64,000 bases of DNA, from positions 9,176,001-9,240,000 of the forward strand of contig CM119373.1 in NCBI GenBank assembly GCA_051294905.1, written 5' to 3'. The stretch's first letter is position 1; every line of letters begins with the position of its first letter. This document shows positions 30,176 to 37,256 of this stretch, piece by piece. The position numbers and the translations under genes are program-made. The notes beneath the pieces are model-generated. The model had not been told where the DNA came from and ran no database searches. It was given only the letters and a program-made list of their open reading frames with translations. This DNA comes from Botryllus schlosseri (Eukaryota).

Positions 30176-31880
30176 ATCTCCACTGATACAGTTGAATATT
30201 ACAATTATAACCAAGAAGAGTTTTTGCAACTTTTTTTTACAACTCCGGCAGCATCCTAACTACTCAGAAGCTATGTACCTTGTTAGTTCAGACCTCGAGG
30301 ACTCCCTGCAAACCGACATCAACGCTTCTATGGAAGAAATCCTCAGAATCACCTACGAGGGGCCGCACAAACTCATCTCGATTACAACCTTTATGAAAAA
30401 GAAATGCGACGAAACGCTCGATAATAAAAATGAATACGCCGAAGATATCAATTCAAAAACCGACGAGATCAGAAGAAAACTACACAAACCAGAAAGAAGA
30501 CAATGGGATAGAGCAGTGGTCCCCAACCTTTTTCGGCGTCAGGGCCAAATTTAGAATGTTAGAGTACGGTCGGGGCCGCACGAATACCAGGGCAATAAAA
30601 CGGACCTAAAATAGTCATTTAAATATGAAAATTGGCATTGTTCCGATCAATCGCTTGACGCCATTGGGCATTGTTATGGCCATTGTGTTGCGGCGCTAGG
30701 GTTCCTGGACCTCCCATCGTGTCGTGCAACAAAACCCTAACGGAAAACATATCCGGATACGTGGAAAACTATCTTAAACCTCCGGTGAAAAATACACCAA
30801 GTTTTGTCGTAAATACACCAAGTTTTGTCGTGACACCACGGACTTCTTAAACAAACTCAAGAACGTCAATCACTTGAAATCAGCAACATGTTAGTCACCA
30901 TGGACGTGTATCATCCCTGTATACGAGTATTCCGCAAAAAGATGACAAGGAAGCGGTCGAAAGATCTCTTGTAGAAAGTGGACATCCATTGAAAAACATC
31001 ATCGTGGAACTAATCGGCTTCACGCTGACGCACAACATGTTCAAATTTAACCAAGACATATTTCTGCAGCTTCAAGGCATGGCAATGGGCACGAGATTTG
31101 CTCCGCAATACGCGAACCTTTTCATGCACCATTTTGAGGCGGATTTCATGGAGAATCAAACATTTCGGCCTATATTTTACACGCGGTACATCGACGACAT
31201 ATTCATGATATGGACCCATGGCGAACGGTCTCTACAAACGTTTCACGAGGCCATATAAACCAATTCCACCCTAATATTCGCCTAACCATGGAAAGCTCAA
31301 TGGTTGCAGTTCCCTTCCTCGACACGCTCGTCAACACCGAAGAAGGCCGTGTTTTCACGTCACTCTACCGCAAACCAACTGACTCGGGTAAGATTTTATT
31401 TAAATTACCATAGTTCTCATCCGTTACACTGCAAAAAAGGAATATTGTACAGAAAAGCCCTTCGAATACACAAAATCTGCTCAAAGGAAGAGGACAAAAA
31501 TGATCACTTGGAAGTTTTGAGAAATGAACGAACCAAATCTGGCTACGACCAACAGCTAATAATGACTCAAATAAAGAAGGCTCCCATGTACCACGTGAAG
31601 AACTCCTTGGTTGCAGTCCGAATAATGATGAGGAAGCACGAGATCACAGAGTGCATCTGGTCACGACTTATTTTCTGGGAGCAGAAAGGATCCGCATTTT
31701 CTGGGAGCAGAAAGGATCCGCAAGATTTTGCGAAAACATCAGCGAATACATAATAATGATCCAAAATGCAATGAAGTATATCCGAGGAGGCCTACTTAAG
31801 CCATAAGACAACCACGCAGCTTGCGTAACATTTTAGTGAATAGCGAACTACCCCGGTCAAGACAAAAAAAACGGCGTGGA
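30176..31880 (+). pseudogene. Penelope-like retroelement reverse transcriptase, frameshifted, ends before the GIY-YIG domain
   Basis: PIVSCNKTLTENISGYV, DTTDFLNKL, QLQGMAMGTRFAPQYANLFM, RYIDDIFMIW, PFLD, YRKPTD, HSSHP..K, and RSLRNILVNSELP. Confidence 0.92.
30514..30600. mobile_element. hAT left-end fragment inserted in the PLE
   Basis: CAGTGGTCCCCAACCTTTTT terminus. Confidence 0.55.
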
Positions 31881-31920
31881 AAATCGTCATGGTGATACCC
31901 TCCAACTCCACCAAACCTGA

Positions 31921-34260
31921 AAAAAGACCTTCAGAAAACTCTTCGCTACCTTCCGTAACATTATGTTACACACCCAAACTCTTCTTTCACTCTTCTCACA
32001 ACACACTTTAACCTTCACACGTAAAAATAACTCTACTATCGTAGAAAACCCAGACAACTCTACTATCGTAGAAAACCCAGACATTGTACAACGCATATCA
32101 AACTACTTCAACAACCTCAACTCCGCCCAAGAGAAACTCGACCTCATTGTAAACTTAAACTACAAAAATCCAACATTAACCGACACATGTAAGAAGTTTT
32201 CGACAACCTTCAACCAAGACGTTTACAACCTACTCGTTAACACACCAGAATTTAATCGACAAAGACACAACACAGGAGTTTAACACACCCCACACACCTT
32301 TTCATAACTTTACCACTTTCAAACTTTCCTCCTCTCTGTCGGAGATATTAAGTTTAGGACCCTCTTCTATTCCTACACACAGCATTATGGCCACCAAAAC
32401 ACTCACAAATCAAATCACGCACTCTGTATTAGACCTACTACTGAAAACTAACACTCACCACCAAATTCCAACTAAACCTTTTAAGCACCACACACGATCC
32501 AAATCATTACCTCTGTCACAGAAATTAAATTCTGTCATCCGTAAAGCGCACTCGACATACACCAACTGCAACACAAGAAATATCATACTGAATACCTTGG
32601 ACGAACTGGAAATCTTCAGAGCCACAAAAACCTACTATCAACCACACCAAACCAACATCTTCCAAAGCCCAAATCGACAACATCAAGATAATAGCAAATA
32701 GAGATGACATCATTATTAACGTAGCCGATAAGAATCTAGGATTTTGCATGAATACGACGGACTGGTACATACATGAAACCGCACGCCAACTTCAGCATAA
32801 CTTATACAGTACACACCTGTATCACTGAACTTGGACACAGCATTCAACGATAGGACTGATATCATAAAAAAACATTCGGATGTTTTAGATGCACAACACA
32901 TTTCTTTCCTAGAATATCGAACCAAAGATAACTGCCACGTCCCCTTATTTAACCTATTACCAACCCCACAAATTAGGAAAAGGACCTTTTCACCATACCG
33001 ATGAACATAAACTTAAAGCCAGACCCATTATTTCGGCTCACTCATGGATCACCGTAGAACCTGGTAAACTTTTGGGCAACATACTTTCAGAATGGAAAGA
33101 AGACTACATCCAATATCTTCAAAATATGGACATCACACCTACACTGACCAAAAACAGTCGTGAGATCACTTACGCCCTAGATAAAACACCTGTCATCGGA
33201 ACCCTTTTCAACACCCAAATAATCACCTTCGATTTCGAATCGCTACACACCAATCTCAAAAACATTTACGCCATAAATAAAATTAAATCTACACTCGCCA
33301 TCCCCAACATCTACACTCACCATCCCCGACAACATCTTCAACCTTACCATGGATCTCTTCACTTTTGCCAGAGTCTTTGTTTTTTTTCTTCTGCCGATGA
33401 CCTATATAAACAAAGAGATGGTTTAGCAATGGGAAGCTGCTACTCTGCACAAGCCGCCGATCTTACTCTTGCAATCTACGAAGAAGACATATTATCCGAA
33501 ATCTTTACTATTTGGCCATTAATAATTTTCCGCAGATATTTAGACGACGGACTTATAATTACCCACCTATACCATGCTCACCTGAACAGCTTCACCAGTT
33601 ACATCAGCAATATATACCCATATACCCCGCACACTTGATTATTAACATTCAGCTGCAACCTTATTCACAACCTCTTCCTTAATCTTAACATACGTTTCGA
33701 CGAAAGAACCCTTCAAAAAGGATTGATTGGTCATAATACTTCAAACCCGCTTCCCTTTAATCTTATATTCCACACGACAGCAACCATCCCCCTCACACTT
33801 TCACTGGAATTGTAGCAACCGAAATAAACCGGTACAACCACACAAATTCGAACCGTAAATATCTGAAATACACAACGCATACATTCGCATAGATTCAAAA
33901 GTAGACTTCACAAACTTAATTACCCCAGAAGAATCATAAAACAATGCAAGATTATCGCCAACAGAGGTACGAAGAGAGAAAAACTCACCCGTAATCTGAC
34001 CTACATCACACACCAATTCTCCAAAGTCTTCAACCACAAAGAACAGATCCGAAGAATTACCAAACGCAGTTACCCCAGCCCCTTTGGCATTGGATTCAAA
34101 ACTGGAAAGAAATTAAAGCAATATTTTACAAATAACAAACTGATCCACAAAAAGATGAAGACAAAGAAGAAACTGAGCAAGTCAAAAAAGAAGAAGAACC
34201 ATCATTCTAAATTTCAAACACCTTGGGCATTTCCACCTTTCCACCCGCATTACCACTAGC
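31921..34260 (+). pseudogene. PLE-type reverse transcriptase (several frameshifts), basic C-terminal tail, no GIY-YIG
   Basis: FHNFTTFKLSSSLSEILSLGP; DIIINVADKNLG..DWYI; PHK..KARPIISAHSWIT; FDFESLHTN; YKQRDGLAMGS; RRYLDDGLII; SNHPPHTFTGIVATEINRY; RLHKLNYP; GFKTGKKLKQYF; then KMKTKKKLSKSKKKK and a stop. Confidence 0.88.
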
Positions 34261-35113
34261 ACTATTATACAGCATTATTCTTCGTCCCTAACTTTACCCT
34301 TTCAGTTTTCTATACATACATACGTCATACATTTATGCTGCCATGAACCCAACCCATATCTAACTTGCACTCCCCACCTCCATCTTACAGTCCCTAGGAT
34401 ATATTGTCCCCTACCTATACCTTACCCACTCACTAATATAACCCTTTATAGTAACTTTAACCATACCCTAACCGCTAACCCGATCTTCTTTGAACCCCTA
34501 TATTATATTTTATATGACTCATCACCCCGATCCGTACCCTAACCCACCCACCTTATCTCTCCTTACTTTGACTTTACAGTGACATTAACATTTTACCCTT
34601 ATCCTAGAAATGTTTATAACACTAATTGACGTAACAAACCCCAACATTATCCTAACCCACTATGATTGATACCGACCCTTTTAATTAGTTGACCAAAATG
34701 CTAACATTTTACCCTCTCCCATTTACAACCTTAATAACAATGTAATATACTAATTGTTGCCATAAACCCTAACCCACCAACCCATAGAACCCTAAATCCA
34801 CTAACTTTGAGCACCCATTTTCACTCTAACAATTTACCCCCTCCTAACCCCCCCCCGCCATTATTACCCACTCAACCCTCACCTTACCCATACAATCTAT
34901 ATATTTAATAACATATCAAGTTACCGGTCCTTTATAATTTTCACTTATAACATAGCTTTATAGACGTACCCACCCTCATACAACCCCATTACATTATCTT
35001 AATACTCACTAATTAGCCTACCATACTCTCTTCATATTACCTTTATCTCCACCAGGTACACTCTACCCCCTCCCCCACCCCATTACATTATCTAGCCCTT
35101 TCAAACCATAATA

Positions 35114-35469
35114 TAGGCTTACCATATTTTGGAAATCTAAAAAGAGGACACTTTTTCAGAAATTTCATACTTGCAAAACCGGAGAAGAATTCTCAAAAAC
35201 CGGTGAATTTTTTCCCACTTTGTGATCGGTTGACTAAAAAAAAAGTCATCTTTTCGCTCAGAGCTAAATTCACCGTTTTTCACCCCGGAGCTTCACTTAT
35301 GTGCTAATTTGCGGCATATCACTCGCAATTTGCTCTGAATCTGACCTAAATTTTCAAAAAAGAGGACAAAATCTCAAAAACGAGGACAAAAGGGCGTCCT
35401 CCGAGGACACTTTCAAAAAAGCCAAAAAAGAGGACAAATCCTCTTAAAAGAGGACGTATGGTAAGCCTA
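35114..35469. mobile_element. hAT MITE (AAAAGAGGAC family), copy 1
   Basis: Perfect TIR TAGGCTTACCATA; perfect TSD CCATAATA (35106-35113, 35470-35477). Confidence 0.95.
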
Positions 35470-35638
35470 CCATAATATGACCAGTTACTTTACCTCTACC
35501 CACCTCCTACCAATCTATCCCTCCCCCATTACGCCACCCAGTTGATATTATCTATTGTACATATACATCTATACCCCACATCTACTCCGTATCTAGCATT
35601 ACAACTTTGCACTCAAGCTAACACCATATACCCTAAAC

Positions 35639-36146
35639 TAGGCTTACCATATTTTGGAAATCTAAAAAGAGGACACTTTTTCATAAATTTCCAACTTTCA
35701 AAATCGGAGTAGAATTCTCAAAAACCGGTTAATTTTTCCCACTTTGTGACTGGTTAACTAAAAAAAAAAAAAAAGGTCATCTCTTCCGCTCAGAACTCAA
35801 AATACCGTTTTTCTCCCCACGTTGCCAGGTGGATGACTAAAAAAAAAAGGTCATCTTTTCCGCTCAGATCTCAAAATAACGTTTATTACTCCACATCGCC
35901 AGATGGATGACTAAAAAAAAAAAAAAAAGGTCATCTTTTTGCTCTGAGCTAAAATCACCGTTTTTCACCCGTCGGAGCTTCACGTCTGTGCTAATATGTG
36001 GCATATCACTCGCAATTTGCTCTAAATCTGCTCTAAATCCTAAAAAAGAGGACGAAATCTCAAAAAAGAGGACAAAAGGGCGTCCTCCGAGGACACTTTC
36101 AAAAAAGAGGACAAATCCTCTTAAAAGAGGACGTATGGTAAGCCTA
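35639..36146. mobile_element. hAT MITE (AAAAGAGGAC family), copy 2 with internal duplication
   Basis: Perfect TIR TAGGCTTACCATA; perfect TSD CCCTAAAC (35631-35638, 36147-36154). Confidence 0.95.
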
Positions 36147-37256
36147 CCCTAAACCTAACATTATATGCCATACCCCTCTCCTATTATCCCTATACCGCTA
36201 TAATTGCCACTAATACATATTTTAGATATCTATACCACATACACACCTTCATATACTCTCCGCCATCATACATACCCCACTCAGCTTGATAGTCACATCT
36301 TCAAATAGCCAGCTTCTGTAAATTCACATCTCTTTGTTATATTCGATCGTAAAAATTCCAAATGGATCCACTACAGAAATCATATACTGTGCCTTAAAAT
36401 GTGAAGTATATTTTTCTGTTTCGCTGCCTTCGGCAGCTCAACACAGTGACACCATGTAATATTTTAATTGACACTTTTTTGTACGTGTAGTTTGACATTT
36501 TACTGTACGCGTTGACACTTTTCTGTACGTGTATTGTACTACAACGTGTATTATACTACAAACACCTTATATCGTATCCAATTTTAGGAGCACAGCTTAC
36601 TTCACGCATTTCTAATATAAACTACATCTTTGTGCCTATGACGTCATAAAGTACACAATTCTGGAATCTGGAAAGCTCTCTCGCGCACTATGATGTCATA
36701 ATATGTATATGTTCAAAATTCGAAATCTTTTTGCGTTGCTCTCTTTGCGTTACTTTCGCTTTATCACCTGATAAAGGAGTAGAGCTCCGAAAGCTCGTGT
36801 AACTATAATAAAGTTATATTCACACAAGTGGACGGTAAACTGGGTGTGGAAGCTATCAAGGTCTCACGCATTTGAGACAGATCACTAGCTCTTCTATTCA
36901 TAGGCCCTGTAACACAGTTGTTACATGATGCATAATATTGATTCATATCTGCACAGTTGGCCCAAGCTTTTTCACTATAAATTCTATTTCGAAATTCAAG
37001 ACTGAGTTTGAAGTTTATAACCAAATGCTGTGGTATCATACTACAAGGTATATGGAAAACCCACCTCCCAATCTATTATCTGTACCTCGCCTCGAACTGC
37101 TAACAGAGCTTTTGAATGAGAAGTCCGCACTAGAGCAGGGGTCTGAAAAACATTGGCATACTAATAATTACCGGTCGGTATGGTATGCTATTCCACATTA
37201 CAACGGATAATTAAACTTCCATGAACTGCATTAGTTGCGGGCTTGTCGGCTCTTTA

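Follow-up and report, generated by a model that had tools for sequence, protein, structure and literature searches.

A truncated copy of an OTU-RT element

The 64,000-nucleotide stretch of the Botryllus schlosseri genome considered here (C3:9,176,001-9,240,000, hereafter the window) carries, at positions 31,890-36,444 of its + strand, a single 5'-truncated, frameshifted and dead copy of a Penelope-like element (PLE). Intact members of its family encode a reverse transcriptase (RT) preceded by a predicted OTU cysteine protease, and we refer to the family as OTU-RT. The copy probably descends from an autonomous family about 5.8 kb in length, which lacks an endonuclease (EN) and would prime synthesis on DNA ends that are already present.

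The extent of the copy follows from blastn alignment with an intact member on contig C8 (L036:2055-6675), with identities of 93% over the main coding block (31,890-34,715) and 83-95% over blocks of the 3' untranslated region (UTR). An earlier note on this DNA had placed the element at 31890-34260; in the alignment it reaches 36,444, with two later insertions inside it and some 906 bp of its 3' UTR gone. The RT motifs named in that note could all be located on the + strand, where translation finds them distributed over three frames between 32,300 and 34,127: FHNFT (32300-32314), LSLGP (32348-32362), ADKNLG (32724-32741), RPIISAHSWIT (33021-33053), FDFESL (motif A, 33228-33245), QRDGLAMG (motif B, 33411-33434), YLDD (motif C, 33537-33548), SNHP (33779-33790), NYP (33918-33926) and GFKTGKKLKQYF (34092-34127). 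Three-frame translation of 29.5-36.5 kb brings out two different RTs on the + strand, the other one belonging to the element that surrounds this copy.

Three parts of the coding region can be followed, all on the + strand. The first, at 31892-32698, is a remnant of a helical linker together with the N-terminal PLE motifs (FHNFT, LSLGP); in the alignment it begins, with VIPSNSTKPEK, near residue 192 of the intact open reading frame (ORF). The RT fingers and palm (ADKNLG to YLDD), assigned from homologs, occupy 32702-33635 and include the longest open piece (32913-33635, 241 aa). The thumb and C-terminal region (SNHP, NYP, GFKTGKKLKQYF) follow at 33639-34256, where the frame ends, as the earlier note had seen, in a lysine-rich tail in place of a C-terminal GIY-YIG domain (stop at 34256; no GIY-YIG by hidden Markov model, HMM). 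Because its start matches about residue 192 and the OTU domain is gone, the copy is 5'-truncated, and its missing N-terminal domain is therefore uninformative. The ~125 upstream codons that the note recorded as free of GIY-YIG do indeed show no endonuclease, but they are not the true N-terminus, the copy having been cut at ~codon 192. The decayed state posited in the note is borne out by comparison with L036: across 31,890-34,300 (2.4 kb aligned) there are 70 substitutions and 16 indels, along with one in-frame stop at 33,758; coding sequence holds 14 of the indels, and 11 of these 14 shift the frame.

A search of the genome (495.5 Mb in 219 contigs) with the 241-aa piece recovered about 30 copies of the OTU-RT family, with E values down to 1e-117, and open frames of 918-991 aa are present in several of them. 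Protein analyses were carried out on naturally intact copies rather than on repaired or consensus sequence, and three intact ORFs are those of L036 (L036:1481-4363, 961 aa), L037 (L037:4493-7345 on the minus strand, 951 aa) and P0001 (960 aa, a database protein from an SRA assembly). The intact product is a single ORF with, in order, an N-terminal OTU cysteine protease, a linker of ~180 residues that AlphaFold2 models as long helices, the RT (residues ~330-930) and a short, basic, lysine-rich tail. The OTU assignment comes from matches to Pfam PF02338 (E 1.7e-11 and 5e-12; scores of 45.2 and 46.9 bits, the cutoff being 23.3) and is also given by the protein atlas; the catalytic motifs DGACFFHA (D-G-x-C) and LHFWSL (H-F) are kept in L036, L037 and P0001, and the domain is a predicted cysteine protease/deubiquitinase. 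Between subfamilies, the ratio of nonsynonymous to synonymous divergence (dN/dS) is 0.08 for the OTU domain, 0.12 for the RT and 0.22 for the linker, and synonymous sites are close to saturation. These values show that the protease is a maintained part of the element and that all three parts of the ORF have evolved under purifying selection. Sequence searches of the PDB return weak OTU matches only and no RT, and within the 2.3-kb 3' UTR there is no further sense ORF that reaches 70 aa. We found no paper in the open-access literature that links OTU with PLEs; the fusion may already be catalogued in Repbase, and OTU-like domains were reportedly noted for some Poseidon-type PLEs (Arkhipova 2006).

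The endonuclease is missing at both ends of the protein. Neither Pfam nor a custom GIY-YIG HMM, which was built from GIY-YIG-bearing hits and recovers 18 such proteins among the hits, finds the domain at either end of the three intact ORFs. The custom HMM likewise has no match in the OTU-RT family or its 16 nearest relatives, and no signal in any forward frame of the window between 33,800 and 36,444; Pfam gives no RT match on the window copy's own pieces. A T5orf172 domain (GIY-YIG clan) was considered as a hidden endonuclease in the lysine-rich tail and rejected, as its E value of 0.28 is below threshold, it is absent from the intact ORFs and the custom HMM is negative. The claim of the earlier note that no endonuclease exists at either end, read there from a decayed copy, thus extends to the longer intact copies (961, 951 and 960 aa).

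Further features of the copy concern its base composition and later damage. G content falls sharply from ~22% to 6-10% at 31,900 and comes back up after ~36,300, with two higher islands that are insertions resembling miniature inverted-repeat transposable elements (MITEs). The first is 354 bp long (35115-35468, no strand assigned), has terminal inverted repeats AGGCTTACCATA / TATGGTAAGCCT and a 10-bp target duplication ACCATAATAT, and is absent at the homologous L036 site. The second, a 506-bp member of the same family (35640-36145, no strand assigned) with a 9-bp target duplication ACCCTAAAC, was recognized by reading the sequence and by comparison with L036. Both landed in the C-rich 3' UTR of the copy. 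An internal deletion of ~906 bp relative to L036 (5658-6564), located at 36333-36335 on the + strand, takes out of the 3' UTR an RNA block that is both structured and conserved.

Substitutions in the copy are strand-asymmetric: over 31890-35638, relative to L036, G-to-A changes amount to 6.2% per G site and C-to-T changes to 2.2% per C site, with CpG context in only 6 of 21 G-to-A changes. Sense-strand G is 11-19% in the whole OTU-RT family and its distant relatives, and the asymmetry is compatible with long-term G-to-A pressure on the cDNA route. Hypermutation after insertion was rejected as the main cause of the G-depletion since the G content is just as low in intact copies and distant relatives; the G-to-A excess in the window copy stays. 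The frame-breaking changes are in part perfect or near-perfect tandem duplications, of 27 bp (32029-32083) and 22 bp (33287-33331), and further small ones of 8 bp (33612-33627) and 10 bp (33876-33896) are likewise not point mutations.

Insertion site and activity of the family

The copy is nested in a canonical PLE on the same strand. On the 5' side (30660-31889) this host element shows a different RT (Pfam RVT_1, E 1.2e-6) with the motifs GMAMGTRFAPQYANLFM, YIDDIF and YHSSHP, and its ORF heads, by eye, into an apparent GIY-YIG start; a GIY-YIG remnant at 31,700-31,889, visible in this way, was set aside because the HMM match is statistically not significant. On the 3' side the host resumes at 36445-36864, as judged from paralogs that hold both flanks. 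In paralogs on C16, C4, C2, C9, C10 and C12 the two flanks are 409-460 bp apart (for example, C16:9908523-9909173 with 9909583-9909976), and from this spacing some 340-400 bp of the host PLE are missing at the insertion. The missing segment is the part expected to encode most of the host's GIY-YIG domain.

Neither the window copy nor three young copies show a target-site duplication. One young copy, on C1 (23.755-23.759 Mb), is 5'-truncated within the RT, has no target duplication, and is 99.3-99.4% identical over 3.1 kb to the copy on C8; the flanks of the two loci are different, and the family has therefore been recently active. The combination of truncation, lack of duplication and target loss fits what would be expected of endonuclease-independent insertion at a pre-existing break.

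The nested position raises the question of whether the same element might instead use nicks provided in trans by the GIY-YIG endonuclease of co-resident endonuclease-bearing (EN+) PLEs, or land in their cleavage or replication intermediates. It is true that the window copy is inserted in a canonical PLE, close to the end that codes for the endonuclease, and EN+ PLEs are very abundant in the genome. Considering, however, that EN+ PLE insertions normally have target-site duplications and that the four copies have none, and that the flanks of other copies are unrelated, with a single nested case examined, we regard a supply of nicks in trans as unlikely, and prefer insertion of an EN-less element at ends that exist independently of it.

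More than half of the RT-bearing copies lie within one 3-Mb stretch, C3:6.4-9.2 Mb (L005-L008, L013-L016 and L022-L026), and several copy pairs on C3 have identical scores (for example, at C3:6791069 and 7954719). This concentration suggests a segmental duplication or an island rich in transposable elements.

RNA data (one bulk run, one single-cell run and two contig sets) give low, patchy coverage, and the reads are mostly 95-99% alike and therefore derive from other copies. Splice-like joints on family copies (L036:900-6800; RNA runs X24, X22, X11 and X18) all have CT..AC ends, for example at 1334/1505, 3002/3339, 3537/3872 and 4223/5570; on the + strand such ends amount to GT-AG introns on the antisense strand, which suggests spliced antisense transcripts through some family copies.

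Kinship of the reverse transcriptase

Among 1.84 billion representative proteins, 238 match the 241-aa RT piece, 18 of them below E 1e-10. Besides P0001, the nearest are proteins of 600-850 aa on contigs of ~3-7 kb from unrelated environmental assemblies, and GIY-YIG-bearing PLEs occur among the more distant matches. The relatives carry PF28514 and PF26215. All of those without an endonuclease have in common a C-terminal motif, KKLK..LLTKK.LH.K, that aligns with the window's GFKTGKKLKQYFTNNKLIHKK, and each stops a few residues after it. In an alignment of 22 sequences, the PLE core motifs and the N-terminal HNFT / GP-F-IP motifs are kept throughout.

A maximum-likelihood tree of 89 RT cores (LG+C20 with posterior mean site frequencies, PMSF; unrooted) unites the four OTU-RT rows in one clade with support of 100/100. 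This clade lies within a larger one of 20 rows (99/97), none of which has GIY-YIG; a second clade, of 30 rows (99/96), takes in all 16 GIY-YIG-positive rows, and many other lineages separate the two. The RT thus lies outside the GIY-YIG-bearing clade rather than nested within it, and this placement among GIY-YIG-free RTs, together with the intact copies that have no GIY-YIG, supports the view that the window holds a decayed member of an endonuclease-deficient PLE lineage.

Could the family nevertheless be an offshoot of an EN+ clade that lost its endonuclease recently and gained OTU later, and so not belong to an old EN-minus lineage? Secondary loss is documented elsewhere, in shrimp MjPLE01 or Chlamys PLE-X (PMC8557442), and in EN+ PLEs the linker ahead of the endonuclease is the counterpart of the K-K-L-K motif. 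On the other hand, the nearest 16 relatives, which come from several unrelated environmental assemblies at 22-30% identity, are all EN-less with the same end motif, and all GIY-YIG rows are in a distant clade. Any loss must then be ancient, amounting to an EN-minus lineage, and a recent one seems to us quite improbable; we therefore retain the reading of an autonomous family that lacks the endonuclease as its normal condition.

The AlphaFold2 model of an intact copy has a mean predicted local distance difference test (pLDDT) score of 75, with residues 200-945 at 85-95. The top Foldseek match in the PDB is the Tribolium TERT structure 3du5 (E 1.8e-7), with several other TERTs in the top 30 and further matches to Prp8, LINE-1 ORF2p and group II intron RTs; template modelling (TM) scores against the PDB are 0.28-0.43, low because the query is multi-domain. 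The best AFDB cluster, aligned end to end with a TM score of 0.69, is represented by U5H1J9, a 704-aa EN-less RT whose accession series we take to be that of Microbotryum, where Coprina occurs. In the protein atlas, the closest clusters consist mostly of rotifer proteins that carry DUF8422 and HTH_animal but no GIY-YIG. The AFDB and protein-atlas matches are leads toward Coprina and Athena rather than tests of such kinship.

Termini, telomeres and priming

The 3' UTR of the window copy (34257-36422, + strand) is G-poor (~7% G) and contains dispersed motifs in CCCTAA register, as determined by counts of hexamers and 9-mers. It is followed at 36423-36444 (+ strand) by a terminal hairpin, GCTGCC-TTCG-GGCAGC, and then TCAACAC, with flanking DNA from 36445. 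All subfamilies (L036, L037, L038 and L039) have the 16-nt hairpin core GCTGCCTTCGGCAGCT in identical form, the full 22-mer occurring in the L036 type; the letters after the hairpin are TCAACAC in the L036 type, TCATCAC in L037 and L038, and TTACAAC in L039. Beyond the terminus the flanks diverge at once. The 22-mer has 37 exact occurrences in the genome, and the last 200-600 nt of the element are much commoner than its RT, with at least 535 candidate places.

The element has a tandem partner, a 1.36-kb non-coding unit found in head-to-tail arrays (L054-L060, C17:1.934-1.947 Mb; L062, C5:0.817-0.819 Mb). This unit, which is a non-autonomous relative of the OTU-RT element, has in common with it the 5' ~90 nt (L036:882-970) and the 3' ~500 nt; from these termini the 5' end of the autonomous element lies near L036:882, and its full length is ~5.8 kb. 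Units are joined by CAACAC followed by TGTGATCAATCCGGATCACGACG. Tandem arrangement was observed in the non-autonomous relative, as well as in one RNA/DNA contig, and no pseudo-long terminal repeat (pLTR) was found beside autonomous copies. The 3' flank opens with TG, as does the 5' end of the element, in 9 of 16 single-copy insertions; this is compatible with internal initiation on tandem-derived RNA, a process shown for an EN+ PLE (PMC11167929). Another repeated unit, GGTGGAAACATTTTTGACCGCCTTCGGCG, stands directly beyond the 3' terminus in L063-L069 and has a similar UUCG-loop hairpin, which hints at composite arrays of related short elements.

A block of ~190 nt in the 3' UTR (L036:6150-6300; L037:3165-3320, minus strand) is conserved across subfamilies above the level of the ORF, with CUGA(U/C)GA in a loop and closing helices that show compensatory changes (CG to UA); it is this block that the internal deletion removed from the window copy. 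A hammerhead ribozyme was considered for it and rejected on Rfam searches and on the arrangement of the core, although Rfam may overlook minimal hammerheads of the pseudoknotted kind. Rfam gives no match at E<=1 in L036, L037 or the window at 29.5-38 kb, at E<=5 in the tandem units, or at E<=10 in the conserved block, and the arrangement CUGANGA...GAAA occurs on neither strand.

The telomere repeat of this genome is TTAGGG, and the sense strand of the 3' UTR is enriched in the complementary register. Hexamers number 36 against 11.1 expected in the window copy and 52 against 15 in L036, and 9-mers number 6-9 against about 0.4 expected (six against 0.38 in the window). In both the window copy and L036 this excess is ~3-fold for the hexamers and 15-20-fold for the 9-mers; it is weaker in L037, and the ORF has none. 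The motifs are dispersed through the UTR and are not at its terminus. Beyond the 3' end of the L037 copy, 640-930 bp away, four (TTAGGG)2 dimers lie within 290 bp (L037:1754-2044), reading CCCTAA in the orientation of the element. In the contigs of the environmental relatives, no telomeric repeats were found.

Athena and Coprina attach to G-overhangs by way of terminal reverse-complement repeats situated beside a hammerhead ribozyme (Craig et al. 2021, PMC8557442), and the earlier note had proposed a possibly telomere-associated lineage. If the present family were a true telomere specialist of this type, its interstitial copies would be relics of former chromosome ends or healed breaks. The enriched motifs in the 3' UTR, the protein-atlas and AFDB leads toward rotifer proteins, and a mild crowding of RT-bearing copies near contig ends (7 of ~30 within ~1.4 Mb) all speak for this possibility. 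Mapping the copies relative to contig ends and telomeric arrays, as the note had suggested, argues against it: the 37 exact 3' termini are spread over 15 contigs at interior sites and none adjoins a telomeric array, and a genome-wide search for (CCCTAA)2 in the 30 nt after the 3' terminus gave 0 matches. On its 38.4-Mb contig, the window itself lies at 9.2 Mb; clusters of RT-bearing copies occur on C3 (0.8-1.3 and 6.4-9.2 Mb) and C10 (2.5-4.4 Mb), and the young copy with 99.3-99.4% identity is at 23.76 Mb of a contig of ~41.8 Mb. With no hammerhead adjoining the motifs and the copies dispersed, two of the three Athena/Coprina features fail, and only the CCCTAA-like motifs of the 3' UTR recall those elements; the telomeric association is not upheld by location, and a specialist of that kind is very improbable. 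It is harder still to believe in a domesticated, RT-derived host gene, as the long intact ORFs under purifying selection might suggest, when there are dozens of copies, many 5'-truncated or decayed, when the termini are defined and a non-autonomous derivative exists, and when near-identical copies occupy different loci.

The explanation that we prefer, and consider probable, is that the window copy came from an autonomous EN-less OTU-RT element priming on existing DNA ends. In such a pathway, a G-poor RNA would be translated, and the RT would recognize a structured 3' UTR through its terminal UUCG hairpin and conserved internal block. Synthesis of cDNA would then start from one fixed position, located at the 3' end or just beyond it, and in the absence of a nuclease the RT would take 3'-OH ends that exist already, at breaks, nicks or eroded ends; C-rich, CCCTAA-like tracts may aid annealing to G-rich single strands. 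The expected outcome would be 5'-truncated copies without target-site duplications, sometimes with target loss, such as the ~340-400 bp of the resident EN+ PLE at this site. The OTU domain would most likely strip ubiquitin-like modifiers from the element protein or ribonucleoprotein, or else trim a polyprotein.

Several points weigh against this explanation. The precise 3' ends are difficult to reconcile with priming by annealing at internal CCCTAA tracts. The mode of insertion is judged from four copies without empty-site controls, and the target loss from paralog coordinates. The rows of the tree were sampled by similarity to the query and include no reference sequence named as Athena, Coprina, Naiad, Neptune or TERT, and some rows counted as lacking GIY-YIG may be truncated gene models. 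The OTU part of the AlphaFold2 model is of low confidence (pLDDT under 50), and the segment at 150-190 is disordered and unannotated. Finally, no full-length sense transcript was seen in the low-coverage RNA data.

The family can be compared with several known systems. According to Gladyshev and Arkhipova (2007), as relayed in PMC8557442 and PMC5537684, Athena elements, which are EN-minus PLEs of bdelloid rotifers, resemble the family in having a PLE RT without endonuclease, an extended helical N-terminus, 5'-truncated copies and, perhaps, in the reverse-complement telomeric motifs toward the 3' side. The present family differs in lying off chromosome ends, in motifs that are dispersed over a 2.3-kb UTR rather than terminal, and in its UUCG hairpin end, N-terminal OTU, host group and lack of a detected hammerhead. 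Coprina comprises EN-minus PLEs of fungi, protists and plants; its single EN-less RT ORF is similar, and the best AFDB fold cluster is an EN-less RT that aligns over its whole length, whereas the present family is found in an animal, carries OTU, is spread interstitially and has no hammerhead that we could find. With canonical EN+ PLEs (Penelope/Poseidon, Neptune, Nematis and Hydra) the family shares the motif set (HNFT/GP, ADKNLG-type, RPI, FDxxSLYT, GxAMGS, YxDD and SNHP), 5' truncation, head-to-tail arrays (here observed for the non-autonomous relative) and non-autonomous derivatives, but it forms a separate clade and has no C-terminal CxC linker/GIY-YIG, no target duplications in the copies examined and no detected hammerhead.

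Likenesses to more distant systems are of a different sort. TERT provides the best solved structures for the RT (3du5, and also Candida, Tetrahymena and human TERT) and likewise involves a C-rich, G-poor template strand with CCCTAA registers, but the present family is multi-copy and mobile, copies its own 5.8-kb RNA, has no TEN/TRBD match and is only 10-13% identical. A papain-like OTU fused to the replicative enzyme of a genetic parasite is also known from Helentrons (PMC6431247) and from the nairovirus L protein (PDB 6oat), the fusion partner here being a PLE RT. Endonuclease-independent LINE-1 insertion, at breaks and dysfunctional telomeres, similarly produces truncation and target deletion with no target duplication; LINE-1 has another class of RT, and in the present family the absence of an endonuclease is the normal state and the 3' ends are precise.

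A broader proposal, which we put forward tentatively and would ourselves place somewhat short of an even chance, is that the family represents an animal lineage of primordially EN-free PLEs outside the telomere niche. Such a lineage would combine OTU with a telomerase-like RT, use a hammerhead-free 3' module common to its tandem partner, prime on existing ends, and constitute a third EN-minus kind beside Athena and Coprina. To our knowledge, EN-minus PLEs have so far been described as telomere-bound, relying on terminal telomeric repeats and a hammerhead ribozyme, and they are thought to be akin to the ancestor of telomerase. If a reference tree puts the family in a known clade, it would simply be one more catalogued PLE, unusual for the accessory domain that it carries. 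Otherwise, a recently active, dispersed EN-less family in another animal would show a telomerase-like RT colonising a genome without a nuclease of its own, and would offer a natural system for studying the way in which these RTs locate primers, the use of a deubiquitinase to a retroelement, and how the ends of PLE RNA are recognized.

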